Shown here: piece by piece, positions 2,762 to 23,253 of the stretch | Layout of the letters: every line of letters begins with the position of its first letter | Numbering within the stretch: the stretch's first letter is position 1 | Notes under the pieces: model-generated | What the model was told of the DNA's origin: nothing | Databases searched by the model: none | What the model saw: only the letters and a program-made list of their open reading frames with translations | NCBI GenBank assembly: GCA_002269645.1 | Contig: NIVC01005179.1 | Coordinates: 1-23,520, forward strand | DNA from: Macrostomum lignano | Taxonomy: Eukaryota | Direction: 5' to 3' | Length of the DNA stretch: 23,520 bases | Program-made: the position numbers and the translations under genes

Positions 2762-3915
2762 GCGTCATGTCAAACATAAAAGACGCGTCATGTCAAACAT
2801 TAAAGACGCGTCATGTCAAACATAAAAGACGCGTCATGTCAAACATAAAAGACGCGTCATGTCAAACATAAAAGACACGTTATGTAAAACATAAAAGACG
2901 CATCATGTCAAACATAAAAGATACGTCATGTCAAAAATAAAAGACATGACATGTTAAACATAAAAGACGCGTCATGTAAAACATAAAACACGCGTCATGT
3001 CAAACATAAAAGATACGTCATGTCAAAAATAAAAGACACGAAATGTTAAACATAAAAGACGCGTCATGTCAAACATAAAAGACGCGTCATGTCAAACATT
3101 AAAGACGCGTCATGTAAAACATAAAAGACGCGTCATGTCAAACATAAAAGATACGTCATGTCAAAAATAAAAGACACGACATGTTAAACAAAAAAAGACG
3201 CGTCATGTAAAACATAAAAGACGCGTCATGTCAAACATAAAAGATACGTCATGTCAAAAATAAAAGACACGACATGTTAAACATAAAAGACGCGTCATGT
3301 CAAACATAAAAGACGCGTCATGTCAAACATAAAAGACGAGTCATGTAAAACATAAAGGACGCGTCATGTCAAACATAAAAGATACGTCATGTCAAACATA
3401 AAGACACGTCATGTCAAACATAAAAGACGCGTCATGTCAAACATAAAAGACGAGTCATGTAAAACATAAAGGACGCGTCATGTCAAACATAAAAGACGCG
3501 TCATGTCAAACATAAAAGACACGTCATGTAAAACATAAAAGACGCGTCATGTCAAACATAAAAGATACGTCATGTCAAAAATAAAAGACACGACATGTTA
3601 AACATAAAAGACGCGTCATGTCAAAAATAAAAGACACGACATGTTAAACATAAAAGACACGACATGTTAAACATAAAACACGCGTCATGTCAAACATAAA
3701 AGATACGTCATGTAAAACATAAAAGACGCGTCATGTCAAACATAAAGGACACGTCATGTAAAACATATATAAGAAGCGTCATGTAATAAATAGACACGTC
3801 ATGTAAAAATAGACACGTCATGTAAAACTTAAAACACACGTCATGTCAAACAAAAGAAGCCCGATGTCAAACAAAAGAAGCGTCATTTCAAATAAAAGAA
3901 GGGTCACGTCAAACA
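2762..3915. repeat. 23-bp tandem satellite (GTCATGTCAAACATAAAAGACGC)n, about 50 copies
   Basis: Direct tandem repeats without spacers, degenerating toward 3900. Confidence 0.97.
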
Positions 3916-4112
3916 TAACTGGCTCGGGGAGGATTGCTAAGATGTCAAAAGTTCATACAGGAATTGATGCAAATCTGTGGCTCATGGGGTTGCTCTGTTG
4001 CTTTTTGAGCCAAAGCACATTGGGGATGCTTTTTTGCCCTAATCGTCATGTTCTTCAAGAAATCAACAATGGTGCCTTTACGAGGTCAAAGCCTATGACT
4101 ATGTACTCGTAG

Positions 4113-4118
4113 TTTATT
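4113..4118 (-). promoter_or_regulatory. Putative polyadenylation signal of ICK-1
   Basis: TTTATT on the + strand (AATAAA on -), about 100 bp downstream of the stop. Confidence 0.45.
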
Positions 4119-4214: not shown

Positions 4215-5178
4215 TTACAAATTTCGGCCCACTCGCACCAGCAACAGGCAGGCCAGTGTTAGCATGGTGACACGCTGGCTGACTTGCAAACCGGAACTTC
4301 TGCCGGATTTGGCTGCCGCGGTCGAGCCGTGAATGCAGTAGCCGAAAGGAAACGCGGGGTTGGCGTCGCAGGCGCCCGAGCAGCAGTCCGGGCCGGTGGT
4401 GCAGGGGTCGCCGCCCTTTCCACAGGGTCGGCTGCCCAGGATTCCGGGAGCTGCTGGGAAGGTAGTGGATTGCTGGGCATACTGAGTTGAACACGGGCTG
4501 GGAAGAGCAACTCTGAGTCTCGCGCCACGACTCCTGGTTCGATTCCTACCAGGATTTTGACTTTCTAACGATTTGATGTGCACCCTGTGTGAGCGTGTGC
4601 ACGAGTGCGTGCCTGAGTACAGTTATTGGCGCTCTTGAGTGTGCTCAGGAGTCAGCTGAATGAGCAGAATTGCCCCAGCGCTGGCTGTGGGTCGATGCCT
4701 CCGAAGGCGTTGCGCCAGGGTGGCTGCAGCCTGCGTACAGTTGTTTTTGTATTTTACACAGTTGGAACAGGCGTGCATGTATGTATTGATAGAGGCAGGG
4801 GCTGTGTGCACGTACGCAGTCACACGCACAGGCACACACTCACACAGGAGTGCACAGCGGCCCTGACTTAATTTATCGTTTCGGCATGTACACTTCCCAC
4901 TTCCTTGAGGGTCGGCCCTCAAAGGGCGTTAATTGCACGAGCAGAGCCGAGCAGAGATTCCAATTCAGGCCCAAATTAAGGCGACTACACTTGGAATCGA
5001 GCCTGGGCCGCTGGCACATCAGAGCACCGCACTGGACCTCTGGGCTGCGCCCCCCACCCCCGTAATAATACAAAGTTCATGAAAGTGGTATTATTAAACA
5101 AAGTATAACTGACTGACCTGTGTGCAGAGCAAGAAAGATTACAAGTCTCAGATAGCGACCTGGTGTGTTGGTTGACAT
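4215..5178 (-). CDS. ICK-1: secreted cystine-knot (knottin) peptide, two exons, join(5178..5118,4450..4215)
   Basis: Exon 1 encodes MSTNTPGRYLRLVIFLALHT+G and ends at donor CAG|GTCAGT (phase 1). Acceptor TTCCCAGCAG|CT at 4451/4450. Spliced product: MSTNTPGRYLRLVIFLALHTAPGILGSRPCGKGGDPCTTGPDCCSGACDANPAFPFGYCIHGSTAAAKSGRSSGLQVSQRVTMLTLACLLLVRVGRNL*. Framework C-X6-C-X5-CC-X3-C-X10-C. AATAAA on the minus strand at 4118-4113. Confidence 0.8.
4577..4856. other. Imperfect ~45-bp inverted repeats bracketing ~280 bp (MITE-like) in the ICK-1 intron
   Basis: Left TGTGCAC-CCTGTGTGAGCGTGTGC matches the reverse complement of the right end, TGTGCACTCCTGTGTGAGTGTGTGC. No clear target-site duplication; the arms are partly low complexity. 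Confidence 0.4.
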
Positions 5179-5405
5179 TTAAAAGAAGATACTCAAAAGC
5201 TGCAAAAATTACCTAAGCCTGAAGACACGCAAGTTGCCAGGCCTGAGGAGCAACTATAGAAATCTAAACAAGTCAACACTGTCTATGGCCACAGCAGCAA
5301 ACTGAATCAAAGTCGCATGGGAATTTGTTAAGGACAAGTAGGAGCATTATTTAAAACGTTGAGCGATATTTGAAAAGCTGACGCTGAGCTGACCGACAAA
5401 GCGCG
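5179..5405. promoter_or_regulatory. Putative bidirectional promoter region between ICK-1 and ICK-2
   Basis: Only 227 bp separate the two divergent ATGs (5178 on -, 5406 on +). TATA-like TATTTAAAA near 5348. Transcription starts are not visible from sequence. Confidence 0.5.
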
Positions 5406-6091
5406 ATGTGGCAGATTGGCTTTCTCTTGTTGGTACTTTTTGCCTCTTTGCTCATGGGTGAGTAAAAAGTGAATTTGTAGTTTCTGACCAAATGGCACCT
5501 GTTTCACCTCCGACAGATGTGACCTTATCCAAACAGATGTGATCTGAGAGATGTGACATCCTAAAGACAGATGTGATCCTCACCAAACAGATGTAACCTA
5601 TACCGAAAAGATGTGACCTCCACCAGACAGATGTGACCTCCACCCAGACAGATGTGACCTCCACCCAGACAGATGTGACTCTCACAAGACAGATGTGACC
5701 ATCACCAGACAAATTTGACCTCCACCCAGACAAATTTGACCTATATCATACAGATGTGATCCCCAGCAGACAGATGTGATCCCCAGCAGACAGATGTGAT
5801 CCCCAGCAGACAGATGTGATCCCCAGCAGACAGATGTGATCCCCAGCAGACAGATGTGATCCCCAGCAGACAGATGTGATCTTTCCCAGACGTAAATTCT
5901 GACTACCATTATCTTTAAGAGCTCACACAATCGCCGCTCCCCTTCGCGCAGCTCCGAGGGAGGCGGCGGGCTGCAGCCGGCAGTGCAACGGCCTTGGCAA
6001 CGTGTGCAGGCGCCGCGCAGACTGCTGCGAGGGTCTCTACTGCATCGGTTTCGACCCCGTTGTTGGTCGATTCGGCCTCTGCACCGATTGA
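5406..6091 (+). CDS. ICK-2: secreted cystine-knot (knottin) peptide, two exons, join(5406..5457,5952..6091)
   Basis: Exon 1 encodes MWQIGFLLLVLFASLLM+G with donor G|GTGAGT (phase 1). Acceptor CCCTTCGCGCAG|CT at 5951/5952. Product: MWQIGFLLLVLFASLLMAPREAAGCSRQCNGLGNVCRRRADCCEGLYCIGFDPVVGRFGLCTD*. Framework C-X6-C-X5-CC-X4-C-X12-C. Absent from the ORF track because exon 2 has no Met. Confidence 0.85.
5512..5891. repeat. 20-21-bp minisatellite (CAGATGTGATCCCCAGCAGA)n in the ICK-2 intron
   Basis: About 18 units, diverged at the 5' side and near-identical from about 5750 to 5880. Confidence 0.93.
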
Positions 6092-6283
6092 CTCCGCTGC
6101 TGCGAGAGTCACGTGACACTTTTTATTGTTTTTTTTCTCTCAGTACGCTGTTCGATAAACTCGGATCAAAATTGTCTGCGTGGGTAATGGTGCATTTCTT
6201 TGAAGAGCGAACGGCGCCTCCAGTTTATATTGCTTAGATATATCGAGTCTTTAAATTATTAAATGTTTGGTTATTCAGTTACT

Positions 6284-6316
6284 TGCTTAGTTAGTTAATT
6301 AGTTAGTCAGTTAGTA

Positions 6317-6348
<32 letters not shown>

Positions 6349-6474
6349 GTTAGTTAGTTGTTAGTTAGTTTTTAGTTAGTTGTTAGTTAGTTGTTAGTTA
6401 GTTAGTTAGTTTTTAGTTAGTTGTTAGTTAGTTGTTAGTTAGTTAGTTGTTAGTTAGTTAGTTGTTAGTTAGTT

Positions 6475-6551
<77 letters not shown>

Positions 6552-6552
6552 C

Positions 6553-6607
<55 letters not shown>

Positions 6608-6620
6608 CAGTTAGTTAGTC

Positions 6621-6653
<33 letters not shown>

Positions 6654-6655
6654 AG
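6284..6655. repeat. (TTAG)n tetranucleotide microsatellite
   Basis: Long TTAG run with occasional TTG/TCAG interruptions. Confidence 0.97.
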
Positions 6656-7137
6656 TCTGCATGCAAACTAAGGAAATCTCCCATTGACCTGTAGCTCCAC
6701 ACTGCACTGTTTGCACACAAGGCAAATATGCATAATGCTATATCCGACTGAAAAACAGACTCCATTTGTTTCTGAGCAAAATTCACACAAGAAAAGCTCA
6801 GGTTAACCCCAACAACTGAGACTTGCTGGCCAACTTAGGTCACGATTGACACACGGAAACTTCCCCTAGTAGAAAGCTACGTAAAAGTCAATACAACAAT
6901 ATGACTACGATAGAACCGGAAGTGATCCATTTCTTGTAAACGACAATACCCCATGAAGATGATGACAATGACGATGAGGCACAAGAGATGCTGGCCAACT
7001 TCTTCATGCAGCTCGGAGGCATCGCTGACAAAGCGAAGGCAGTTTATAAAAAGACAAAAACCCATCAAATGAGACTTTTAGCACCCCCTGTCTGCAGAAT
7101 CCCCATCACCGATTCGATGCTTTCACCGCCAGTCAGA

Positions 7138-8372
7138 ATGAGAATTCTGCAGTCAGTTGCGTTGCTGTTTTGGACTGCCTTCGGCTGTGGCGCCCTGCTC
7201 GCCCTGCCGGCCGTCTCAGCCCAGGCCGTCACGACCTGGAAGCAGCTCCGAGGTGACGTCTCCGAGTACCGGCTGCTCAAATCGATCCGAGCTCAAGGCG
7301 AGACGCACTGCGTCAGCAGCGCTGCGGCGGCCGGGGCTCACGCGGCCTCCTTCGACGCTGCATCGGGCGGCTGCGACCTGCTGGTGTGCGACCGAGGTGG
7401 CCAGGACGGCTGCAGGAAGTGCCGGCATGAGAGCGACCTGAGTCTGCCGATGCTGTGGGTGAGTGAGCTGAGTCTGCCGTTGCTGTGGGTGAGTGAGCTG
7501 AGTCTGCTGATGATGCTGTGGGTGAGTGAGCTGAGTCTGCCGGTGCTGTGAGTGAGTGAGCTGAGTCTGCTGATGATGCTGTGGGTGAGTGAGCTGAGTC
7601 TGCCGATGCTGTGGGTGAGTGAGCTGAGTCTGCCGGTGCTGTAGGTGAGTGAGCTGAGTCCGCCGGTGCTGTGGGTGAGTGAGCTGAGTCTGCCGATGCT
7701 GTGAGTGAGTAAGCTGAGTCTGCTGATGATGCTGTGGGTGAGTGAGCTGAGACTTGGGTCGCTGACTGATGAATCGTCCTGTCTCTCAAACTGCAGATGA
7801 AAGAGCCGTCGGAAACCTGCTGGACGACGTTCCAGCGCAGAGTCGACGGCTCCGTCAGCTTCAACCGTGGCTGGTCGGAGTACGTCAGTGGATTCGGTCA
7901 GGGCGAGAGTCTCAACTACTGGATGGGGCTGGAGCAGCTGCACCAGCTCACCGCCACGGGAGTGTGGAGAGTCCGCTGGGAGTTCAGCGACTGGAACGGC
8001 ACCTGGTACTGGGCTGAGAATGCTCCGTTCTCTGTTGGCCCAGCGACTGACAAGTACAGGTGCTCGATGGGACCGTTGGACGCGAGCAGGTCGAGTGTCG
8101 GACAGCGAACTGATTGGGACTGGTCACCGAACAACTGGCAGTTCAGCACGCCGGATGCTGACAATGACAACTGGCCTGAGGGCAGCTGCGCCCATGACAG
8201 GTCAGCTGGTTGGTGGTTCGGCTGGTGCAATTTCATCAACCCCAACGGAGTGTACCTGGTGCCACCAGCCGCATTTTCAGGCGGAGGAATGTACTATTAT
8301 CTGCACGACGCTGGCCTGGAGCTGACGCTGTTCTACTCGATGAAGAACTTCGAATGCTTGATTCGCCAGTGA
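7138..8372 (+). CDS. FReD-A: secreted fibrinogen-related domain protein (ficolin/FREP-like), join(7138..7458,7797..8372), ~298 aa
   Basis: Signal peptide MRILQSVALLFWTAFGCGALLALPAVSA, then a Cys-containing N-terminal module. Donor TGG|GTGAGT (phase 0), acceptor CTGCAG|ATG. Exon 2 has FReD motifs WTTFQRRVDGSVSFNRGWSEYVSGFG, YWMGLEQLHQLT, FSTPDADNDN, CAH...GWWFGWC...NPNG. Which of the tandem donors is used is inferred. Confidence 0.85.
7438..7751. repeat. 30/33-bp tandem repeat spanning the exon-1 end and 5' splice site of FReD-A, 10 units
   Basis: Unit CTGAGTCTGCCGATGCTGTGG-GTGAGTGAG. Every unit contains GTGAGT. Confidence 0.93.
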
Positions 8373-8389
8373 TGACGGGGGGGAGTTAA

Positions 8390-8809
8390 TCCGTGGAGCT
8401 GAGACTGCATGGATTGAGTCACCCCGTGGAGCTGAGACTGCATGGATTGAGTCAACCCGTGGAGCTGAGACTGCATGGATTGAGTCACCCCGTGGAGCTG
8501 AGACTGCATGGATTGAGTCACCCGTGGAGCTGAGACTGCATGGATTGAGTCACCCGTGGAGCTGAGACTGCATGGATTGAGTCACCCCGTGGAGCTGAGA
8601 CTGCATGGATTGAGTCACCCAGTGGAGCTGAGACTGCATGGATTGAGTCACTCCGTGGAGCTGAGACTGCATGGATTGAGTCAACCCGTGGAGCTGAGAC
8701 TGCATGGATTGAGTCACCCAGTGGAGCTGAGACTGCATGGATTGAGTCACCCAGTGGAGCTGAGACTGCATGGATTGAGTCACCCCGTGGAGCTGAGACT
8801 GCATGGATT
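8390..8809. repeat. 32-33-bp tandem repeat (CCGTGGAGCTGAGACTGCATGGATTGAGTCAC)n directly after the FReD-A stop, about 13 units
   Basis: Starts about 18 bp after the TGA. An inverted copy lies at 18244..18661. Confidence 0.95.
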
Positions 8810-9912
8810 TATGAACTCAACAGACTTAACTTTTTCTTTAGATAGCTTGCTGGCTGTATGCATGTAATATGCCTATTTGGGAGCCCCGATACCTCATTAT
8901 TTATAAAATGACATGATATAGTTTAGTTTAGGTTTATTCAATAATGCGCATATGGGAGCTTCTTGTGAGGAAAATTTTCTTATAAGCTCAGCGGATAGCC
9001 TCGAAAAGGGGAGCTGAAATTGTCGCCACATAAATTGCGTGATGAACTCGTTTTGTTTCGAATGTTTCTTTGTTGTTATTTAATAGTGTTCCATGTCTGC
9101 AAATATTCAAATTAATGTACGAGTCAAGGGATTGCTTTTAGCTCTTACTCTGCCGGGTTTTTGTTTCACATTATTTATACGGTCGAAAGTCTATCTTGAT
9201 GAGCACTTATACGAACTGCACACCTTCTTGCTCCCGTGGCCGTGAAACAACCCTTTTTTGATGAAGTGCCATCTTTGTAAGTAGCCACCGCCAGTGGCTG
9301 CGAACCTTATTCAATTAATTAGTCTTCTGTCTCACCTTCATTCAGAATACTGTGTCACGTAAAAATTCAAAATACTCTGGTGTTCCAAAAGTAATTAGTC
9401 CCCCCCCCAAGGTAACTTCTAAACTGCGGTATATAAATGAATGAAAAATTACACACACACTCATGTATATGGGCCAAGCAGCTATGTAAAGTTTGGGCTC
9501 TCAGTCGAATACTTAAAAGAATCTATCAGGTAGAACGTGAAGCCTATATAATTAATGGTAAAAAACCAGAGCCGTGGTTTAAAAGAATTTTACTGGTGTC
9601 TAAAGTTAGTAGTTGTCTTTCTGTTTTTGAGTTGTCTGCCATACTTTTCTATAGGTAAAATGAGTGAAATACTGAAATGAGTTACAATAAAGAGAAGGTC
9701 AGGTTTTTTGCTTACACGTCAGAACAGCAACTTGGTGTATTTAGATCGATTAGTAATGGACGATATCGATGTAGCGCCCGCTAGGATCGAGTTTATTTTA
9801 ATCAATTCGCAATTGATAATAATCCAGTCAAATATTATGTTGCGATTTCAGGGCCGGTTTTACTGGCTCTGTAATCGGTTTTAGCTGACCGGGGCCGGTG
9901 CCTCTGCCCGCT

Positions 9913-9961
9913 GGGTGGGGGTGGGTGCGGTGTGCGTGGTGTGGGGTGGTGGGGGTTGGGG
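9913..9961 (+). other. G-rich tract with G-quadruplex potential
   Basis: Six runs of 3-5 G with mostly short loops: GGGTGGGGGTGGG...GGGGTGGTGGGGGTTGGGG. Confidence 0.4.
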
Positions 9962-10296
9962 TCGCGCTGGTCCTTTTATTCGCGTGCTCTGCCCTCAGCG
10001 TTGGCATGCTTGGCAAAAAATTTTTTTGGCTACCAAAGATATCGATATCTCACTGCCAATATGCTCCGCGCTGACAATCTAACAGCCAAACAACTCAAGA
10101 ATGAGTGATTCCTGCACGCCGATGAGTGTGTCAATGGCAAAATTGACGCACGATTCTGCCATTGACGCACGAGTCGGCGTGTTGGAATCCCATTGTCGAT
10201 TGACTATTAAGTTGCATCATAAATTTGAGTGAGTGCACAGAGAGGGGTCAAGGGGGCGAAGCCCCCTTGCGGGGGTGTGGGGGCGGAGCCGCGGTG

Positions 10297-10680
10297 GAAC
10301 AAGCCAAGGACTACGCCCGGTACAAAATCCAAGTGGCTGAGCTTTTCGACCGATTCCCAGTGCACCGGGTGGTCCGATTCGACCATGACTACCGCCAGCA
10401 TCGCGCCGCCAACACTCTCCGCTGGGGAAAAGACTGCTCCCAGATGTTTATCAGGTACCTGCTCAGCACCAAGAGTGACCAGCAGAACTAGCAGAACCAG
10501 ACAGCCAGGCGTCCCCAGCCTAAAAATAACCGCATCGTTGGGCCGCGAACATCCTCAGGCCGTGAGCTCTGTCTGTCTTTCAACAGCACCAACGGATGCT
10601 CAAGAACGAACTGCCGCTTTCTGCATGCCTGTCGAGTCTGCGAGGGCAACCACTCCGAGCAGAATCACGCAAAAAACTGA
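10297..10680 (+). pseudogene. gag-like ORF1 C-terminus of the YR retrotransposon
   Basis: YKIQVAELFDRFPVHRVVRFDHDYRQHRAANTLRW, then a premature TAG at 10489-10491, then in the same frame CLSFNSTNGCSRTNCRFLHACRVCEGNH. Confidence 0.72.
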
Positions 10681-10799
10681 GAAAGCGCGCCAATTGCGCG
10701 CGCACAGCCGATTTTACGCCTTCTGATTTTAACAACCTGACGCAGCCTGCCCCAGCGGCAGGCCTCCTCAGGCCGTCTACTCAAATCTCTGATCTGACG

Positions 10800-12300
10800 C
10801 GGCCGTCTGGTGATCTCCGAATCGACGCCTGGCGCCTGGAGCTCGCCGGTGACCACGACGCTGATTTTATTCTTGACGGCATCCCTATGGCTTCCATGGC
10901 TTCCCTATTAAGCATGGCTTCCCTATTGCTGATGACCTTGATTTTACGCCCTGTTTTCTGAGCAACTACAAATCCTCCTACCAAAAGCGCGACCAAGTCC
11001 AAGCAGCCCTAGAAGAAGAAATCCGTCTGGGCAGATACATCCCGGTGGCGGACAAGCCCACGATGGTCTGCAAACTCGGCGCGATTCCTAGGGACAGCGC
11101 CAGCATCTGGCTGATCCACGACTGCTCCGTTCCTCACCGCCAAAGCCTGAACGACCACTACGCACAGCAGCGCAAGCTCCGCTTCACTTCTGTCGATGAG
11201 GCCGTCAGGTTGATGCAGCCGGGCTGGTTCATGGCGAAGGTTGACATCGCATCCGCCTACCGTGCTGTGCCCATTTCTCCGCAGTGCTACCAAGCCACCG
11301 GGATCCACTGGGACTTCGGTGACGGGCGCTCGGCTTACATAGTGGACACGCGGCTACCATTCGGCAGTCGTGCCTCTGTCAGCATCTTCCATCGTCTCAC
11401 TCAAGCGGTTCGGCGTATCATGTGCCGCAAAGGCTTCCTGGCCACCATTGTCTTCATAGATGACTTTCTTGTCATGGCGAGGACAGAAGCTGAGTGCAAC
11501 CGAGCCTACTGCGAGCTGCGTAACCTGCTCACCGAGCTTGGATTCGTCATCATCGAGAGAAAAGCCGTGCCACCAACAACCAAGCTGCGGTTCCTGGGGA
11601 TAGACATCGATACCGTGCAAGCGAGCCTCTCTTTCCCAGCTGACAAAGCCAAGAAGCTTCAGTTCCCACTTCACACCTGCCTGTCGCAGCAAGACGTGTC
11701 GAAGTCTGAGTTGCAGAAGCTGCTAGGGCATCTCAGCCATATGTGCACTACCGCTCAGCACGGTCGAACCTTCCTGCGCCCGCTCATCGATCTCACCAAT
11801 AGCCTGACGCACCCGTCCGACCGTGTTCAAGTTAACGGTGGAGCTCAGGTCTCAGCTGGAGTGGTGGACGATCGCGTTGAGCATTCTGCCGCCAAAGTCC
11901 GCTTGGCCATCGCGTCGGCCGGCCGCCGCTATCGAGTCTGACGCCTGCGTCGCAGGCGGCGTAGCGGTGCTGCACTTCGACGACAGTGACTCGACCTGGC
12001 TTTTTATTAGCTGGCGGTAGCGAGTTCGAAGAGCTCCACATCAAACTCAAGGAGTGCGCCGCCCCTCTGGTCGCTATCCTGAAGCATCAAGAGGCCCTCA
12101 GCGGCCGCTCCGTTGCGGTGTGCACGGACAGCACCGCTGCCTGCGGCATCATCAACTCTAGCTCGGCCAAGCATCGCAGCATCGCCGACCTGCAGAGGCT
12201 CGTCACTCTGACCTGCATCCAGCGTGACATTATCGTGCGCGCGTACCACGTGCCTGGCCGCTTTCAGCTTCTCGCGGACCCGCTATCCAGAGCTAACGAC
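10800..12300 (+). pseudogene. RT/RNase H of the YR retrotransposon, frameshifted
   Basis: AWRLELAGDHDADFILDGI, EEEIRLGRY, AKVDIASAYRAVPI, LPFGSRAS, FIDDFL, FLGIDIDT; then IESDAC, ELHIKLKE, VCTDS, HVPG..QLLADPLSR. Frame changes near 10884, 11835 and 12010. Confidence 0.88.
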
Positions 12301-12399
12301 CCTAGCCAGCTTGCTAACTTTTTTTTCGTTTCTACGGCACCTGCTACGTGCCTACCCGCTTGCTTGCATCTGCTTGCTTGAGTCCTGCCGCTGCTTCTC

Positions 12400-12645
12400 A
12401 CCTTCTTTTTCAGGTCCGCCTCCTGTGCTCTCAGTGCCTAGCTTCAGCTCGTCCGAAACTACTCGTGTGCAACCACCTGGCGGAGCTGGCTAGAAACCGA
12501 CTGTTCTCCGTCAGCAGCCTGTCCTGTCACCTCGCAGCCGTGTCCTGGTTCTACAAGGCGAACGGTGTGGTCGACTCTACCAAGCAGCCACTGGTACAGC
12601 TCGCGCTGCGCGGAGCCCGACGGCTCCTTGGTGCTGCCCCTAAGT
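12400..12645 (+). pseudogene. N-terminal (core-binding/SAM-like) part of a tyrosine recombinase, truncated
   Basis: NHLAELARNRLFSVSSLSCHLAAVSWFYKANGVVDSTKQPLVQLALRGARR, in the position expected after RNase H. Breaks off into AT-rich DNA before the catalytic domain. Confidence 0.72.
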
Positions 12646-12835
12646 TTTAAACGAGTTTTAACCAAGTTTTAACCAACAAAGTTTTAACCAAGTTTTTCTT
12701 GTTTTAAACGCTAATTTCTTTCCCCTAAGCCGTCATGACCCAGAGGAAGAAGGCAGTTATAGATGTCTAGCCAACGTACATGCAACAAATAGGTTTGTTT
12801 TTGTTCTGTTTCAAGTTGTTTTCGTCTAAAGCTGA

Positions 12836-12935
12836 ATGGCCAAGCGCTACTGCGCTGCTCAGGACTGCTCATCTAAGACTGGTGACAGAAAGGAGGACGG
12901 CAGCAAGGTTAGTTTTTTTACTTTCCTATTAAGTC
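12836..12935 (+). pseudogene. THAP-domain-like N-terminal fragment, probably a DNA transposon relic
   Basis: MAKRYCAAQDCSSKTGDRKEDGSKVSFFTF resembles the THAP start (C-x4-C...F.FP). The distal C-x2-H was not found in frame. Confidence 0.4.
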
Positions 12936-13683
12936 AAGCCAGCAACAGCAGTGCGCGAAGGTGTCTCCATGGCTGTGTTTTCCAGATTGTGCTGTTACAT
13001 GGGGTCGAGGAAAATCACAGATATTTATTGCTGCGTGGAATTGCCCAACAATATGTTCAAATCAAGCTGCATCACACAGTGAGGAGACAAAATTTGCTTC
13101 AAACCTTCTCTGCGACGTCAGCTGACTAAAAAATTATGTTTCTTGGTCAGTGACTTCGAATGACCAATGTACCTGCTGTGCCATTTCGAATAGCTCTATA
13201 ATTTTTTCCTTATTTCCTTACTGTTACATTGGATGAGAGTTACGAGGAATAGAAGTGTACAAAGCTACAAAAAGTAACTTGACATTTTTTACTTTTCACT
13301 TTTTGACTAACTTCCCCCCCCCCCACTTATTCAAAGTTCGATCGCTTTATGCTTAGTTGTCTTGTTTGTTATTTGTTATTTGTTTCAATTACTGCCTCCT
13401 TCAATTTTCTCATAATCAGTCAAGTACAAAAAATACAAACTAATGCTGGTCTATCAAGAGGCAAAATTTGTTTACTTTGTTTATTAAATTCCATCAGCCA
13501 ATGAAATTCATGGGGGGGGAATATCCCAATTTTTAGTAGGTTTTGGCCATAGACTCGTTTTCAGATGAGCGATCCTTTCTTTTCCTTCAACCATGCTTAA
13601 AATGCGTCTGTCTAAGTTTTAGACCTTTAATTAAGAGTTATAACGTTCTCAAAAAATCTGAAGCTTATTAATTTGTCAGGAAA

Positions 13684-16600
13684 ATGCTTCGACAATTCAA
13701 TGCTCTGGTCATTGCTCTGGTCATTGCTCTGGTCATTGCTCTGCTCACAGGTGAGAATATATCGCAGTTTAGTTTATTGAACAACTCTTGTTTGCTATTG
13801 TCTATTGTCCTTCAACCCCTTTAATGATTACATTATTCCCATGTTTTTAGCCATATGATCCCTGTGTCACCTGGGATAAACCAGCCATATGATCCCTGTG
13901 TCACCTGGGATAAACCAGCCATATGATCCCTGTGTCACCTGGGATAAACCAGCCATATGATCCCTGTGTCACCTGGGATAAACCAGCCATATGATCCCTG
14001 CGTCACCTGGGATAAACCAGCCATATGATTCCTGTGTCACCGGGGATAAACCAGCCATATGATCCCTGTGTCCCCTGGGATAAACCAGCCATATGATTCC
14101 TGTGTCACCTGGGATAAACCAGCCATATGATTCCTGTGTCACCTGGGATAAACCAGCCATATGATTCCTGTGTCACCTGGGATAAACCAGCCATATGATC
14201 CCTGTGTCACCTGGGATAAACCAGCCATATGATCCCTGCGTCACCTGGGATAAACCAGCCATATGATTCCTGTGTCACCGGGGATAAACCAGCCATATGA
14301 TTCCTGTGTCACCTGGGATAAACCAGCCATATGATCCCTGTGTCACCTGGGATAAACCAGCCATATGATCCCTGCGTCACCTGGGATAAACCAGCCATAT
14401 GATTCCTGTGTCACCTGGGATAAACCAGCCATATGATTCCTGTGTCACCTGGGATAAACCAGCCATATGATCCCTGTGTCACCTGGGATAAACCAGCCAT
14501 ATGATTTCTGTGTCACCTGGGATAAACCAGCCATATGATCCCTGTGTCACCGGGGATAAACCAGCCATATGATCCCTGCGTCACCTGGGATAAACCAGCC
14601 ATATGATCCCTGTGTCACCGGGGATAAACCAGCCATATGATCCCTGTGTCCCCTGGGATAAACCAGCCATATGATTCCTGTGTCACCGGGGATAAACCAG
14701 CCATATGATTCCTGTGTCATCTGGGATAAACCAGCCATATGATCCCTGTGTCACCTGGGATAAACCAGCCATATGATCCCTGTGTCACCTGGGATAAACC
14801 AGCCATATGATCCCTGCGTCACCTGGGATAAACCAGCCATATGATCCCTGTGTCACCTGGGATAAACCAGCCATATGATTCCTGTGTCACCTGGGATAAA
14901 CCAGCCATATGATCCCTGCGTCACCTGGGATAAACCAGCCATATGATTCCTGTGTCACCTGGGATAAACCAGCCATATGATTCCTGTGTCACCTGGGATA
15001 AACCAGCCATATGATTCCTGTGTCACCTGGGATAAACCAGCCATATGATCCCTGTGTCACCTGGGATAAACCAGCCATATGATTTCTGTGTCACCTGGGA
15101 TAAACCAGCCATATGATCCCTGTGTCACCGGGGATAAACCAGCCATATGATCCCTGCGTCACCTGGGATAAACCAGCCATATGATCCCTGTGTCACCGGG
15201 GATAAACCAGCCATATGATCCCTGTGTCCCCTGGGATAAACCAGCCATATGATTCCTGTGTCACCGGGATAAACCAGCCATATGATTCCTGTGTCATCTG
15301 GGATAAACCAGCCATATGATCCCTGTGTCACCTGGGATAAACCAGCCATATGATCCCTGTGTCACCTGGGATAAACCAGCCATATGATCCCTGCGTCACC
15401 TGGGATAAACCAGCCATATGATCCCTGTGTCACCTGGGATAAACCAGCCATATGATTCCTGTGTCACCTGGGATAAACCAGCCATATGATCCCTGCGTCA
15501 CCTGGGATAAACCAGCCATATGATTCCTGCGTCACCTGGGATAAACCAGCCATATGATCCCTGTGTCACCTGGGATAAACCAGCCATATGATTCCTGTGT
15601 CACCTGGGATAAACCAGCCATATGATTCCTGTGTCACCGGGGATAAACCAGCCATATGATCCCTGCGTCACCTGGGATAAACCAGCCATATGATTCATGT
15701 GTCACCTGGGATAAACCAGCCATATGATTCATGTGTCACCTGGGATAAACCAGCCATATGATCCCTGCGTCACCTGGGATAAACCAGCCATATGATCCCT
15801 GTGTCACCTGAGATAAACCAGCCATATGATCCCTGCGTCACCTGGGATAAACCAGCCATATGATCCCTGCGTCACCTGGGATAAACCAGCTATATGATCC
15901 CTGTGTCACCTGGGATAAACCAGCCATATGATTCCTGTGTCACCTGGGATAAACCAGCCATATGATTCCTGTGTCACCTGGGATAAACCAGCCATATGAT
16001 CCCTGTGTCACCTGGGATAAACCAGCCATATGATCCCTGCGTCACCTGGGATAAACCAGCCATATGATCCCTGTGTCACCTGGGATAAACCAGCCATATG
16101 ATTCCTGTGTCACCGGGGATAAACCAGCCATATGATTCCTGTGTCACCTGGGATAAACCAGCCATATGATTCCTGTGTCACCTGGGATAAACCAGCCATA
16201 TGATCCCTGTGTCACTTGGGATAAACCAGCCATATGATCCCTGTGTCACCTGGGATAAACCAGCCATATGATTCCTGTGTCACCTGGGATAAACCAGCCA
16301 TATGATTCCTGTGTCACCGGGGATAAACCAGCCATATGATTCCTGTGTCACCTGGGATAAACCAGCCATATGATTCCTGTGTCACCTGGGATAAACCAGC
16401 CATATGATTCCTGTGTCACCTGGGATAAACCAGCAATATGATCCCTGTGTCACCTGGGATAAACCAGCCATATGATCCCTGCGTCACCGGGGATAAACCA
16501 GCCATATGATCCCTGTGTCACCTGAGATAAACCAGCCATATGATTCCTGTGTCACCTGGGATAAACCAGCCATATGATCCCTGTGTCACCTGGGATAAAC

Positions 16601-16927
16601 CAGCCATATGATTTCTGTGTCACCTGGGATAAACCAGCCATATGATCCCTGTGTCACCTGGGATAAACCAGCCATATGATCCCTGCGTCACCTGGGATAA
16701 ACCAGCCATATGATCCCTGTGTCCCCTGCAGCCAGCCATGCAAGCCTCAAAGGTACAATATAAACAATAAACTGCCACCCTCAGCTCTGCAATGCCAGGT
16801 GGCGGCTCTACCAGACGACTTAGTGAACTGCTTAACCTTCGGTTTCATGTGCAGCTCAAACTCGGACTGCTGCACGAACACCTGTGCCAGAAGATACAGG
16901 TCATTCCAATACGGACAGTGCAAATAG
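13684..16927 (+). CDS. ICK-3: secreted cystine-knot (knottin) peptide, two exons, join(13684..13750,16785..16927)
   Basis: Exon 1 encodes MLRQFNALVIALVIALVIALLT+G with donor CAG|GTGAGA (phase 1). Acceptor CCACCCTCAG|CT at 16784/16785. Product: MLRQFNALVIALVIALVIALLTALQCQVAALPDDLVNCLTFGFMCSSNSDCCTNTCARRYRSFQYGQCK*. Framework C-X6-C-X5-CC-X3-C-X11-C. AATAAA at 16964-16969. Confidence 0.8.
13849..16728. repeat. 34-bp satellite (CTGGGATAAACCAGCCATATGATCCCTGTGTCAC)n, about 85 copies, inside the ICK-3 intron
   Basis: Period 34 (CCATATG at 13851 and 13885). Variant monomers recur every 578 bp. Confidence 0.98.
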
Positions 16928-16963: not shown

Positions 16964-16969
16964 AATAAA
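16964..16969 (+). promoter_or_regulatory. Putative polyadenylation signal of ICK-3
   Basis: AATAAA 37 bp after the TAG. Confidence 0.5.
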
Positions 16970-18243: not shown

Positions 18244-18661
18244 GTGACTCAATCCATGCAGTCTCAGCTCCACGGGTGACTCAATCCATGCAGTCTCAGC
18301 TCCACGGGTGACTCAATCCATGCAGTCTCAGCTCCACGGGTGACTCAATCCATGCAGTCTCAGCTCCACGGGTGACTCAATCCATGCAGTCTCAGCTCCA
18401 CGGGTGACTCAATCCATGCAGTCTCAGCTCCACGGGTGACTCAATCCATGCAGTCTCAGCTCCACGGGGTGACTCAATCCATGCAGTCTCAGCTCCACGG
18501 GTGACTCAATCCATGCAGTCTCAGCTCCACGGGGTGACTCAATCCATGCAGTCCCAGCTCCACGGGTGACTCAATCCATGCAGTCTCAGCTCCACGGGTT
18601 GACTCAATCCATGCAGTCTCAGCTCCACGGGGTGACTCAATCCATGCAGTCTCAGCTCCAC
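18244..18661. repeat. Inverted copy of the 32-33-bp FReD 3' tandem repeat, about 13 units
   Basis: (GTGACTCAATCCATGCAGTCTCAGCTCCACGG)n, the reverse complement of 8390..8809. Confidence 0.95.
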
Positions 18662-18682
18662 GCGATTGACTCTCCCCCGTCA

Positions 18683-19812
18683 TCACTGGCGAATCAAGCA
18701 TTCGAAGTTCCTCATCGAGTAGAACAGCGTCAGCTCCAGGCCAGCGTCGTGCAGATAATAGTACATACCTCCGCCTGAAAATGCGGCTGGTGGCACCAGG
18801 TACACTCCGTTGGGGTTGATAAAAGTGCACAGGCCGAACCACCAACCAGCTGACCTGTCATGGGCGCAGTTGTTCGCAGCCCAGTTGTCATTGTCAGAAT
18901 CGGGTGTGCTGAACTGCCAGTTGTTCGGTGACCAGTCCGAATAAGTTCGCTGTCCGACACTCGACCTGCTCGCGTCCAACGGTCCCATCGAGCACCTGTA
19001 CTTGTCAGTCGCTGTGCCAACAGAGAACGGAGCATTCTCAGCCCAGTACCAGGTGCCGTTCCAGTCGCTGAACTCCCAGCGGACTCTCCACACTCCCGTG
19101 GCGGTGAGCTGGTGCAGCTGCTCCAGCCCCATCCAGTAGTTGAGACTCTCGCCCTGACCGAATCCACTGACGTACTCCGACCAGCCACGGTTGAAGCTGA
19201 CGGAGCCGTCGACTCTGCGCTGGAACGTCGTCCAGCAGGTTTCCGACGGCTCTTTCATCTGCAGTTTGAGAGACAGGACGATTCATCAGTCAGCGACCCA
19301 AGTCTCAGCTCACTCACCCACAGCATCATCAGCAGACTCAGCTTACTCACTCACAGCATCGGCAGACTCAGCTCACTCACCCACAGCACCGGCGGACTCA
19401 GCTCACTCACCTACAGCACCGGCAGACTCAGCTCACTCACCCACAGCATCGGCAGACTCAGCTCACTCACCCACAGCATCATCAGCAGACTCAGCTCACT
19501 CACCCACAGCATCGGCAGACTCAGGTCGCTCTCATGCCGGCACTTCCTGCAGCCGTCCTTGCCGCCCCGGTCGCAGACCAGCAGGTCGCAGCCGCCCGAT
19601 GCAGCGTCGAAGGAGGCCGCGTGAGCCCCGGCCACCGCAGCGCTGCTGACGCAGTGCGTCTCGGTTTGAGCTCGGATCGAGTTGAGCAGCCGGTACTCGG
19701 AGACGTCGCCTCGGAGCCGCTTCCAGGTCGTGACGGCCTGGGCCGAGACGGCCGGCAGGGCGAGCAGGACGGAGGCGATGGCGCAGAGATGAAGGCTCAG
19801 ATTTGAACTCAT
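18683..19812 (-). CDS. FReD-B: secreted fibrinogen-related domain protein, join(19812..19504,19258..18683), ~294 aa
   Basis: Signal peptide MSSNLSLHLCAIASVLLALPAVSA. Same donor and acceptor as FReD-A. The exon-2 ORF differs from FReD-A at 11 of 191 residues by my count. Confidence 0.85.
19304..19524. repeat. 30/33-bp splice-donor repeat of FReD-B, 7 units
   Basis: Reverse complement of the 7438..7751 array, lacking three units (93 bp). Confidence 0.92.
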
Positions 19813-21851: not shown

Positions 21852-23253
21852 TTATTGCAAGATGGCGAACCGTGTTATTGCAAGATGGCGAACCGTGTTA
21901 TTGCAAGATGGCGCCCCCATGTTACAGCAAGATAGCGCCCCGTGTTACAGCAAGATGGCGCCCCGTGTTATTGCAAGATGGCGCCCCGTGTTATTGCAAC
22001 ATGAGGCCCCGTGTTACTGCAAGATGGCGCCCCCATGTTACAGCAAGATGGCGCCCCGTGTTATTGCAAGATGGCGTCCCGTGTTATTGCAACATGAGGC
22101 CCCGTGTTACTGCAAGATGGCGCCCCGTGTTATTGCAAGATGGCGCCCCGTGTTATTGCAAGATGGCGTCCCGTGTTATTGCAACATGAGGCCCCGTGTT
22201 ACTGCAAGATAGCGCCCCGTGTTATTGCAAGATGGCGTCCCGTGTTATTGCAAGATAGCGCCCCGTGTTACTGCAAGATAGCGCCCCGTGTTATTGCAAG
22301 ATGGCGCCCCGTGTTATTGCAACATGAGGCCCCGTGTTACTGCAAGATGGCGCCCCCATGTTACAGCAAGATGGCGCCCCGTGTTATTGCAAGATGGCGT
22401 CCCGTGTTATTGCAACATGAGGCCCCGTGTTACTGCAAGATGGCGCCCGTATTATTGCAAGATGGCGCCCCGTGTTATTGCAAGATGGCGTCCCGTGTTA
22501 TTGCAACATGAGGCCCCGTGTTACTGCAAGATAGCGCCCTGTGTTATTGCAAGATGGCGCCCCGTGTTACTGCAAGATAGCGCCCCGTGTTATTGCAAGA
22601 TGGCGCCCCGTGTTATTGCAAGATGGCGCCCCGTGTTATTGCAAGATGGCGCCCCGTGTTATTGCAAGATGGTGCCCCGTGTTACTGTAAGATGGCGCCC
22701 CGTGTTATTGCAACATGAGGCCCCGTGTTACTGCAAGATGGCGCCCGTGTTATTGCAAGATGGCGCCCCGTGTTATTGCAAGATGGCGCTCCGTGTTATT
22801 GCAAGATGGCGCTCCGTGTTATTGCAAGATGGCGCCCCGTGTTATTGCAAGATGGCGCTCCGTGTTATTGCAAGATGGCGCCCCGTGTTATTGCAAGATG
22901 GCGCCCCGTGTTATTGCAAGATGGTGCCCGTGTTACTGTAAGATGGCGCCCCGTGTTATTGCAACATGAGGCCCCGTGTTACTGCAAGATGGCGCCCCGT
23001 GTTATTGCAAGATGGCGCCCCGTGTTATTGCAAGATGGCGCTCCGTGTTATTGCAAGATGGCGCCCCGTGTTATTGCAAGATGGCGCTCCGTGTTATTGC
23101 AAGATGGCGCCCCGTGTTACTGTAAGATGGCGCCCCGTGTTATTGCAAGATGGCGCCCCGTGTTATTGCAAGATGGCGCCCCGTGTTATTGCAAGATGGC
23201 GCCCCGTGTTATTGCAAGATGGTGCCCCGTGTTACTGCAAGATGGCGCCCCCA
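21852..23253. repeat. 23-bp satellite (GTTATTGCAAGATGGCGCCCCGT)n, about 60 copies
   Basis: Direct tandem repeats. They generate the repetitive ORFs 21838..23414. Confidence 0.98.

Follow-up and report, generated by a model that had tools for sequence, protein, structure and literature searches.

The described peptides that come closest to the genes considered here are knottins, or inhibitor cystine knot (ICK) peptides. From arthropod venoms they include Xt3a (PDB entry 7rz3), U3-SYTX-Sth1a and U3-SYTX-Sth1h (5fzv, 5fzw), Aca toxin 1 (6nk9), DkTx (7l2m) and Aps III (2m36). Non-venom examples are found in insects (U5EN92 of Corethrella and ALO3 of Acrocinus longimanus, 1q3j) and in the mussel genus Mytilus (the CRP-I peptides), and the same cysteine framework occurs in the conotoxin O-superfamily (framework VI/VII; Pfam PF02950 and PF08087). 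Here, we describe three genes, g1, g2 and g3, of the flatworm Macrostomum lignano. The window analysed is the whole of contig NIVC01005179.1 (23,520 bp), part of the Mlig_3_7 assembly (GCA_002269645.1), and contains all three. On balance, we think that the three are very divergent paralogues, grouped in a small local cluster, and that their products are secreted peptides with the knottin framework.

With the arthropod venom peptides, the flatworm domains share the spacing C-x6-C-x5-CC-x3/4-C-xn-C, a loop-1 glycine and an acidic residue preceding the cysteine pair. They differ in gene structure, having two exons and a phase-1 intron after the signal, and no propeptide bounded by dibasic sites is evident in their precursors. 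The animals also differ: the flatworm is fed on diatoms, and a venom gland is not mentioned in the literature consulted on M. lignano. The insect non-venom knottins were the top remote matches in a profile search of 1.84 billion proteins and in searches of the PDB, and have the CC-x3-C core and the aromatic-G-x-C ending in common with the flatworm domains. This similarity is limited to framework residues, and the dipteran proteins contain four to six tandem knots per precursor, whereas each flatworm gene encodes one.

CRP-I of Mytilus is a lophotrochozoan non-venom family of short secreted peptides with a C-C-CC-C-C array, predicted by AlphaFold to be knottins; its genes are clustered, the loops are hypervariable and the function is unresolved (PMC10138031). 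In Mytilus, the cysteine array is encoded in exon 4 and there are many copies with presence/absence variation (PMC10138031), whereas the flatworm locus has two coding exons per gene and three genes; the likeness is one of framework, and no sequence relationship was seen. The two conotoxin families share the cysteine framework and are the best sub-threshold Pfam matches of g1, but the scores are 19.3 and 16.7 bits against cutoffs of 24.3 and 25.1, the flatworm precursors are without the conserved O-superfamily signal and the gene structure is different.

Gene architecture and cysteine framework

An earlier note on this stretch of DNA had proposed three genes of one architecture. Spliced as proposed there, they yield three intact precursors of 98 (g1, MSTNTPGRYLRLVIFLALHTAPGILGSRPCGKGGDPCTTGPDCCSGACDANPAFPFGYCIHGSTAAAKSGRSSGLQVSQRVTMLTLACLLLVRVGRNL), 63 (g2, MWQIGFLLLVLFASLLMAPREAAGCSRQCNGLGNVCRRRADCCEGLYCIGFDPVVGRFGLCTD) and 69 amino acids (g3, MLRQFNALVIALVIALVIALLTALQCQVAALPDDLVNCLTFGFMCSSNSDCCTNTCARRYRSFQYGQCK), and all coordinates, phase-1 GT donors and CAG|CT acceptors are reproduced. 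The parts of the three genes are as follows:

4113..4118, minus strand: AATAAA polyadenylation-signal-like hexamer of g1, 97 nt downstream of the stop codon
4215..4450, minus strand: g1 exon 2, coding part, with stop codon TAA at 4215-4217 and the knot at 4335-4424, then a tail of 39 amino acids
4451..5117, minus strand: g1 intron, phase 1, with the NAGNAG acceptor CAGCAG; exon 2 starts at 4453 (99-residue form) or 4450 (98-residue form)
5118..5178, minus strand: g1 exon 1, coding part, MSTNTPGRYLRLVIFLALHT plus the first base of an Ala codon; short hydrophobic signal-like segment, donor GTCAGT
5179..5405, no strand assigned: g1/g2 head-to-head intergenic region, 227 bp between the start codons, candidate bidirectional promoter
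5406..5457, plus strand: g2 exon 1, coding part, MWQIGFLLLVLFASLLM plus the first base of an Ala codon; classical hydrophobic signal, donor GTGAGT
5458..5951, plus strand: g2 intron, phase 1, made up largely of a 20-bp tandem repeat (5512-5879)
5952..6094, plus strand: g2 exon 2, coding part, with stop codon TGA at 6092-6094 and the knot at 5984-6082
13684..13750, plus strand: g3 exon 1, coding part, MLRQFNALVIALVIALVIALLT plus the first base of an Ala codon; donor GTGAGA
13751..16784, plus strand: g3 intron, phase 1, 3034 bp; about 85 copies of a 34-bp minisatellite unit (2.9 kb in all) occupy 13849-16728
16785..16927, plus strand: g3 exon 2, coding part, with stop codon TAG at 16925-16927 and the knot at 16829-16921
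16964..16969, plus strand: AATAAA polyadenylation-signal-like hexamer of g3, 37 nt downstream of the stop codon

Each gene consists of two coding exons, the first encoding a hydrophobic N-terminus and the second a short linker and one six-cysteine domain. Exon 1 stops one base into a codon at its GT donor and exon 2 begins CAG|CTC in all three genes, with an intron in phase 1 and a split G|CT (Ala) codon in each case. Each N-terminus opens with a short N-region that is polar or basic, and small residues lie close to the exon junction; the hydropathy maxima over 9-10 residues are 2.7 for g1, which has a short core, 3.1 for g2 and 3.7 for g3. The hydrophobic core of g3 is encoded by a triplicated 12-bp unit.

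The knot domains (CGKGGDPCTTGPDCCSGACDANPAFPFGYC in g1, CNGLGNVCRRRADCCEGLYCIGFDPVVGRFGLC in g2 and CLTFGFMCSSNSDCCTNTCARRYRSFQYGQC in g3) all contain the framework C-x6-C-x5-CC-x3/4-C-x10/12-C, with loop lengths within the knottin range. Alignment of the three leaves P, C, G, C, D, C, C, C, F, G and C invariant. The constants other than cysteine that the earlier note had listed, a glycine at position 4 of loop 1, an aspartate before the cysteine pair and the aromatic-G-x-C ending, are present in all three.

The three-gene framework pattern exceeds chance. A pattern search for the framework, which the earlier note had suggested for the genome, was run in six frames over the window and found exactly three sites, the knots of g1, g2 and g3. 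The strict pattern occurred in none of 300 second-order Markov simulations and the loose pattern a mean of 0.04 times, and there was no match in the reversed window sequence. Two open reading frames in the window look like signal exons, by a definition that requires an ATG, 14-32 codons, a hydrophobic stretch and a phase-1 GTRAG donor; the expectation was 0.32. One is exon 1 of g2 and the other exon 1 of g3, g1 exon 1 falling outside the definition because its donor is GTCAGT. The three reading frames are intact, and the reverse-transcriptase remnants in the neighbourhood are split across frames, again as claimed earlier. As an argument for selection this is weak because the exons measure only 50-240 bases.

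The earlier description captured the core anatomy of the genes and the filling of the g2 and g3 introns by tandem repeats. It omitted a seventh cysteine of g2, located ahead of the knot, an extra cysteine in the pre- or pro-region of g3, the 39-residue tail of g1 and the NAGNAG acceptor of g1. The g1 tail, GSTAAAKSGRSSGLQVSQRVTMLTLACLLLVRVGRNL (4215-4334, minus strand), runs from KSGR through the hydrophobic MLTLACLLLV to RVGRNL. With its small residues, spacer and hydrophobic run it could be an attachment signal of the glycosylphosphatidylinositol (GPI) type, or it could be a C-terminal propeptide freed at KSGR. In the database entry UPI0007A1850F (P0003), the tail DNA is read in another frame after two indels, ending in ...CIHDRGQPNPAEVPVCKSASVSPC and containing two extra cysteines. 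The intergenic region between g1 and g2 is presumed from its position to be a bidirectional promoter, and TATTTAAA is located about 55 nt upstream of the g2 start codon.

Within the g1 intron, at 4520-4560, we noted a stretch resembling a tRNA T-arm, GGTTCGATTCC, possibly derived from a tRNA-derived short interspersed element. Neither ARAGORN nor Rfam detected RNA genes, including at this suspected element.

Fold assignment

The knottin fold predicted for these domains is supported for g1 by a structural model, and for all three by the framework and by profile comparison. When all PDB sequences were searched with a profile built from the three domains, 36 matches appeared at E <= 1. Nearly all of them are ICK peptides; the rest are an uncharacterised protein and a few Dickkopf chains. 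Eight matches had E < 0.001, seven of which are arthropod venom ICK entries; the eighth is 8g4y (MK1-3.6.10, not identified). Xt3a is the best match, with an E-value of 2.6e-7, Aca toxin 1, U3-SYTX-Sth1a and DkTx follow at 1e-4 to 9e-4, and U3-SYTX-Sth1h is also in this group, in which DkTx is represented by three entries. The ICK cysteine framework asserted in the earlier note is supported by the profile as well as by the g1 model.

The AlphaFold2 model of g1, calculated with the alignment of the three sequences, has a mean predicted local distance difference test score (pLDDT) of 82, rising to about 91 across the knot, and contains strands at residues 27-29 and 36-38. A Foldseek search of the PDB with this model returned 13 matches, all knottins or colipase. 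They include SOTI-III as the best, ALO3, Aps III, maurocalcin, imperatoxin, atracotoxin, PAFP-S and omega-Aga-IVB. The target-normalised TM-scores reach 0.68, and the model superimposes on Aps III with a root-mean-square deviation of 1.8 Å over 37 alignment columns.

Pfam gives only sub-threshold matches: Toxin_18 and Conotoxin for g1, Toxin_12 and Dickkopf_N for g2 and Toxin_27 for g3. The toxin families weighed were Toxin_18, the conotoxin O-superfamily, Toxin_12, Toxin_27 and Toxin_21; beside the scores already given for g1, the best were 16.2 against 21 bits and 18.3 against 25 bits.

Searching 1.84 billion representative proteins with the profile produced 76 matches at E <= 0.001, a cut that single-domain relatives would miss. 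About 40 matched sequences other than the proteins of the window itself were examined; these are multi-repeat proteins with domains sharing xDCCSxxC. We traced the sources of ten, among them the mosquito protein LOC129747253, a "putative phenoloxidase inhibitor protein" of Corethrella, a "venom protein" of Cotesia and a metagenome-assembled genome (MAG) of Myxococcota. As judged from the sequences, the matched motif is a generic knottin core and does not establish orthology.

A separate observation concerns P0009, P0011, P0015, P0021, P0029, P0053 and P0076, which carry tandem C-x6-C-x5-CC-x3-C repeats and are apparently bacterial (one comes from the Myxococcota MAG). Several of the multi-repeat matches have leaders of the twin-arginine type, suggesting a bacterial origin.

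In UniRef, the g1 entries A0A267H1P7 and A0A267D9F8 are named "WAP domain-containing protein", which would make g1 a whey acidic protein (WAP), or four-disulfide core, domain protein. The C-x5-CC-x3-C core does resemble the centre of the WAP signature. However, the g1 domain contains six cysteines, as opposed to eight cysteines and four disulfides; Pfam finds no WAP match for g1 even at E <= 10, and the neighbours in both the PDB profile search and Foldseek are knottins. We consider this assignment extremely improbable and reject it.

Annotation, paralogous loci and descent

Two of the three genes are already known as hypothetical proteins. Over all its 63 amino acids, g2 is 100% identical to BOX15_Mlig018955g1 of M. 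lignano; it is also filed as Mlig019895g3 (records PAA45939.1, PAA71507.1 and PAA92185.1; UniProt A0A267FEB7). The g1 proteins are filed as BOX15_Mlig024669g1-3. The 98-residue form is 100% identical over 98 amino acids to BOX15_Mlig024669g3 (PAA92186.1), and a 99-residue form (PAA45940.1, PAA71506.1), the one annotated on NIVC01005179.1 itself, has one alanine more (HTAAPG in place of HTAPG). The two forms are accounted for by the tandem CAGCAG acceptor at 4451-4456, which predicts a difference of one alanine.

The Mlig_3_7 annotation was built from a genome-guided RNA-seq transcriptome using StringTie, TACO, TBONE and TransDecoder (PMC5730564). Because the matching GenBank models derive from RNA-seq (PMC5730564), the splice junctions of g1 and g2, 5118/4450 and 5457/5952, singled out for checking in the earlier note, are already supported by transcripts. 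The g1 junction is also identical in UPI0007A1850F, an independent MetaClust entry.

What is new is g3, which is absent from the protein databases, with zero matches in a collection of 5.8 billion protein clusters. The description of the family as hidden and unannotated therefore holds for g3 alone and fails for g1 and g2. For the GenBank submission, transcripts overlapping repeat annotations were taken out (PMC5730564). Since the g3 intron is almost wholly composed of the 34-bp minisatellite, this filter is a plausible cause of the missing entry; the alternative is that g3 is not expressed.

The head-to-head pair of g1 and g2 is present at two further loci of the same assembly, L001 on the 1.2-Mb contig NIVC01000061.1 and L002 on NIVC01001160.1. 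A g3 copy whose knot is identical is present at L002 too, and L001 breaks off just past an identical g3 exon 1. Around the genes, both loci are 97-100% identical to the window, the main difference being minisatellite length. The g3 intron measures 3034 bp in the window and 518 bp in L002, about 2.5 kb less, with a minisatellite of about 365 bp (18365-18729) instead of 2.9 kb, and the g2 intron is 494 bp long in the window and 1123 and 474 bp at the paralogous loci. In its coding sequence, g3 of L002 differs from that of the window only by A11D, Q25K and C26S, changes that all precede the knot. Because of the C26S change, the extra cysteine of g3 can be placed outside the framework. L001 and L002 are recent duplicates, as expected in a neopolyploid genome. 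With copies 97-100% identical and zero to three differences per gene, a ratio of nonsynonymous to synonymous substitution rates between loci is meaningless.

The relationship among g1, g2 and g3 themselves is far more distant. Common descent is suggested by the shared framework, by equal lengths of loops 1 and 2, by introns that agree in position, phase and the codon they split, by the CAG|CTC acceptor and by tight linkage, with g3 7.6 kb downstream of g2. An old tandem duplication would be the most economical origin of the three genes. An 11-mer that they share, TGGCCATAGAC, was considered as a signal of promoter or exon homology and discarded, its occurrence being within chance.

Several results weigh against a cluster of paralogous, functional knottin genes. 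Pairwise BLASTP similarities, taken as single comparisons, are weak (E-values of 1e-3 for g1/g2, 2e-4 for g1/g3 and 0.08 for g2/g3), and the nucleotide similarity of exons and promoters among the three is not above that of shuffled sequences. Phase-1 introns beside signal peptides are common among secreted proteins generally, which makes the shared intron weaker evidence of descent. No toxin or knottin family of Pfam reaches its gathering score, the best being Toxin_18 (19.3 against 24.3 bits), and every Foldseek E-value of the g1 model is 0.86 or higher, as is usual for domains of 35 residues. Neither a full-text search nor the Macrostomum supplements contained expression or functional data for the gene identifiers. 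For g3 there are, in addition, the lack of any database match, an AlphaFold2 model of low confidence (pLDDT 54), so that the structure prediction proposed in the earlier note gave a confident model for g1 and a poor one for g3, and the fact that all three differences from the L002 copy are nonsynonymous, A11D putting the charge of an aspartate into the signal core.

These last points, together with a signal core made of a triplicated 12-bp repeat and an intron occupied by a 2.9-kb minisatellite, would also fit a g3 that is nonfunctional, either as a decaying duplicate or as a knot exon with a chance upstream ATG-microsatellite open reading frame, leaving g1 and g2 as the only working genes. 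We regard this as rather unlikely. The g3 frame is intact and the knot identical at two loci, the flanks of which have diverged by 1-7% with indels. Its donor, acceptor and split G|CT codon agree with those of g1 and g2, and an AATAAA hexamer follows 37 nt past the stop codon. A signal-type exon stands at the right place and on the right strand, while 0.32 would be expected by chance in the whole window. The missing database entry could be explained by the deliberate repeat filter applied for GenBank (PMC5730564). Taking both sides together, g1 and g2 are very probably real genes for secreted knottin-type peptides, and g3 is likely to be one too.

Neighbouring genes, possible roles and significance

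Apart from g1 to g3, the window contains the following features:

170-2053: degenerate retroelement remnant, with RVT_1 (170-592) and RNase_H (981-1724) in different frames
2762-3918: tandem repeat of 23 bp, 51 copies
6287-6652: tandem repeat TTAG, 94 copies
6988-8372, plus strand: fibrinogen-related domain gene, with a signal-peptide-like first exon
8391-8809 and 18244-18662: 33-bp unit, 13 copies, an inverted pair adjoining both fibrinogen-domain genes
11045-12381: second degenerate retroelement remnant, with RVT_1 (11045-11941), then an open reading frame in another frame
18683-19812, minus strand: fibrinogen-related domain gene, with a signal-peptide-like first exon
21852-23251: tandem repeat of 23 bp, 61 copies; the array creates long spurious open reading frames

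The two fibrinogen-domain genes, predicted to be secreted, flank g3 in inverted orientation. Each matches Pfam Fibrinogen_C with an E-value of about 1e-33 and has an intron consisting of a 30-bp minisatellite, the unit of which contains GTGAGT. An exact-protein lookup of the fibrinogen-related open reading frame, which is not the full gene product, found no match. In invertebrates, fibrinogen-related proteins are typically lectins of innate immunity, and their position on both sides of g3 mildly favours a defence context.

If the peptides act as their architecture suggests, the precursors would enter the secretory pathway and the signal would be cleaved near the exon junction. The domain would then fold into a compact knot with three disulfides, and the resulting protease-resistant peptide would act outside the cell, binding its target through the variable loops. 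Regarding the target, our tentative preference, held with low confidence, is for a host-defence or deterrent effector of mucosa or body surface rather than a venom for prey capture. This preference arises because the worm is fed on diatoms in culture, because the literature mentions no venom apparatus and because the gene neighbours are lectin-like and fibrinogen-related. M. lignano is cultured on unicellular diatoms, and a review of the species lists adhesive and prostate glands, a venom apparatus being absent from its account (PMC7053086). Below host defence or deterrence we would rank, in descending order of likelihood and all with low confidence, a reproductive effector, an endogenous inhibitor or modulator, and a neurotoxin.

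As reproductive effectors, the peptides would be made in cells of the prostate or other genital glands and would manipulate the partner after transfer with the ejaculate, like the many short and rapidly evolving seminal fluid proteins of this hermaphrodite. They are indeed short, secreted according to prediction, lineage-restricted and very divergent among paralogs, database searches with g1, g2 and g3 found no homologue outside the species at the level of the single domain, and M. lignano, with its prostate glands, is a model for sexual selection (PMC7053086). However, the gene identifiers are absent from the supplements of the Macrostomum reproduction-gene study PMC7336406 and of PMC5816591, files that are possibly incomplete, and we hold this role to be improbable.

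About equally improbable is a role as endogenous regulators, either by inhibiting enzymes, as the phenoloxidase inhibitor of the housefly does, or, for a membrane-tethered g1, by modulating the worm's own channels or receptors. The top remote profile matches are dipteran multi-knottin precursors, one of them the putative phenoloxidase inhibitor mentioned above, but these matches score through summed repeats and have only the generic xDCCSxxC core in common with the flatworm domains. The best Foldseek match, SOTI-III, is a trypsin-inhibitor knottin. Tethering would be consistent with the hydrophilic spacer and hydrophobic stretch at the g1 C-terminus, which resemble a GPI-attachment signal; yet the hydrophobic run comprises only some 10-14 residues before charged residues follow, and UPI0007A1850F has the tail in a different frame.

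The leading idea of the earlier note, that the peptides are neurotoxin-like ligands of ion channels used against prey or predators, appears less likely still. Its best arguments are that the nearest solved relatives by profile (Xt3a, DkTx, maurocalcin and psalmotoxin) are channel-acting venom ICK peptides and that the sub-threshold Pfam matches are to conotoxin and spider-toxin families. The scores against the Pfam toxin families all stay below threshold, though, and the framework is common to antimicrobial, inhibitor and signalling knottins. The animal is fed on diatoms, the review consulted does not mention a venom apparatus (PMC7053086), and our literature searches found no ICK toxin of a flatworm.

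The more general searches of the open literature likewise found no knottin or ICK peptide from a flatworm, a planarian or Macrostomum. At its boldest, the locus could hold the first knottin/ICK family described in Platyhelminthes, in an innate-defence neighbourhood with fibrinogen-related lectins, with g1 as a GPI-tethered "prototoxin" that modulates the worm's own channels or receptors, convergent with the three-finger proteins Ly6/Lynx1, which have a different fold. This combination is speculative and, taken as a whole, highly unlikely.

Few scaffolds are as common among small secreted peptides as the knottin, two of the three genes were already in GenBank, and there is no sign of a new mechanism. 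If the peptides are expressed and fold as predicted, the scaffold would be extended to the flatworms, in which our literature searches found none described. M. lignano offers transgenesis, in situ hybridisation and RNA interference by soaking, so that what an animal knottin does outside venom could be tested directly, which is rarely possible. The third gene, g3, was probably lost from public annotation through its minisatellite intron and the filtering of repeats, and other genes for short secreted peptides in the repeat-rich genome of M. lignano may be missing for the same reason.

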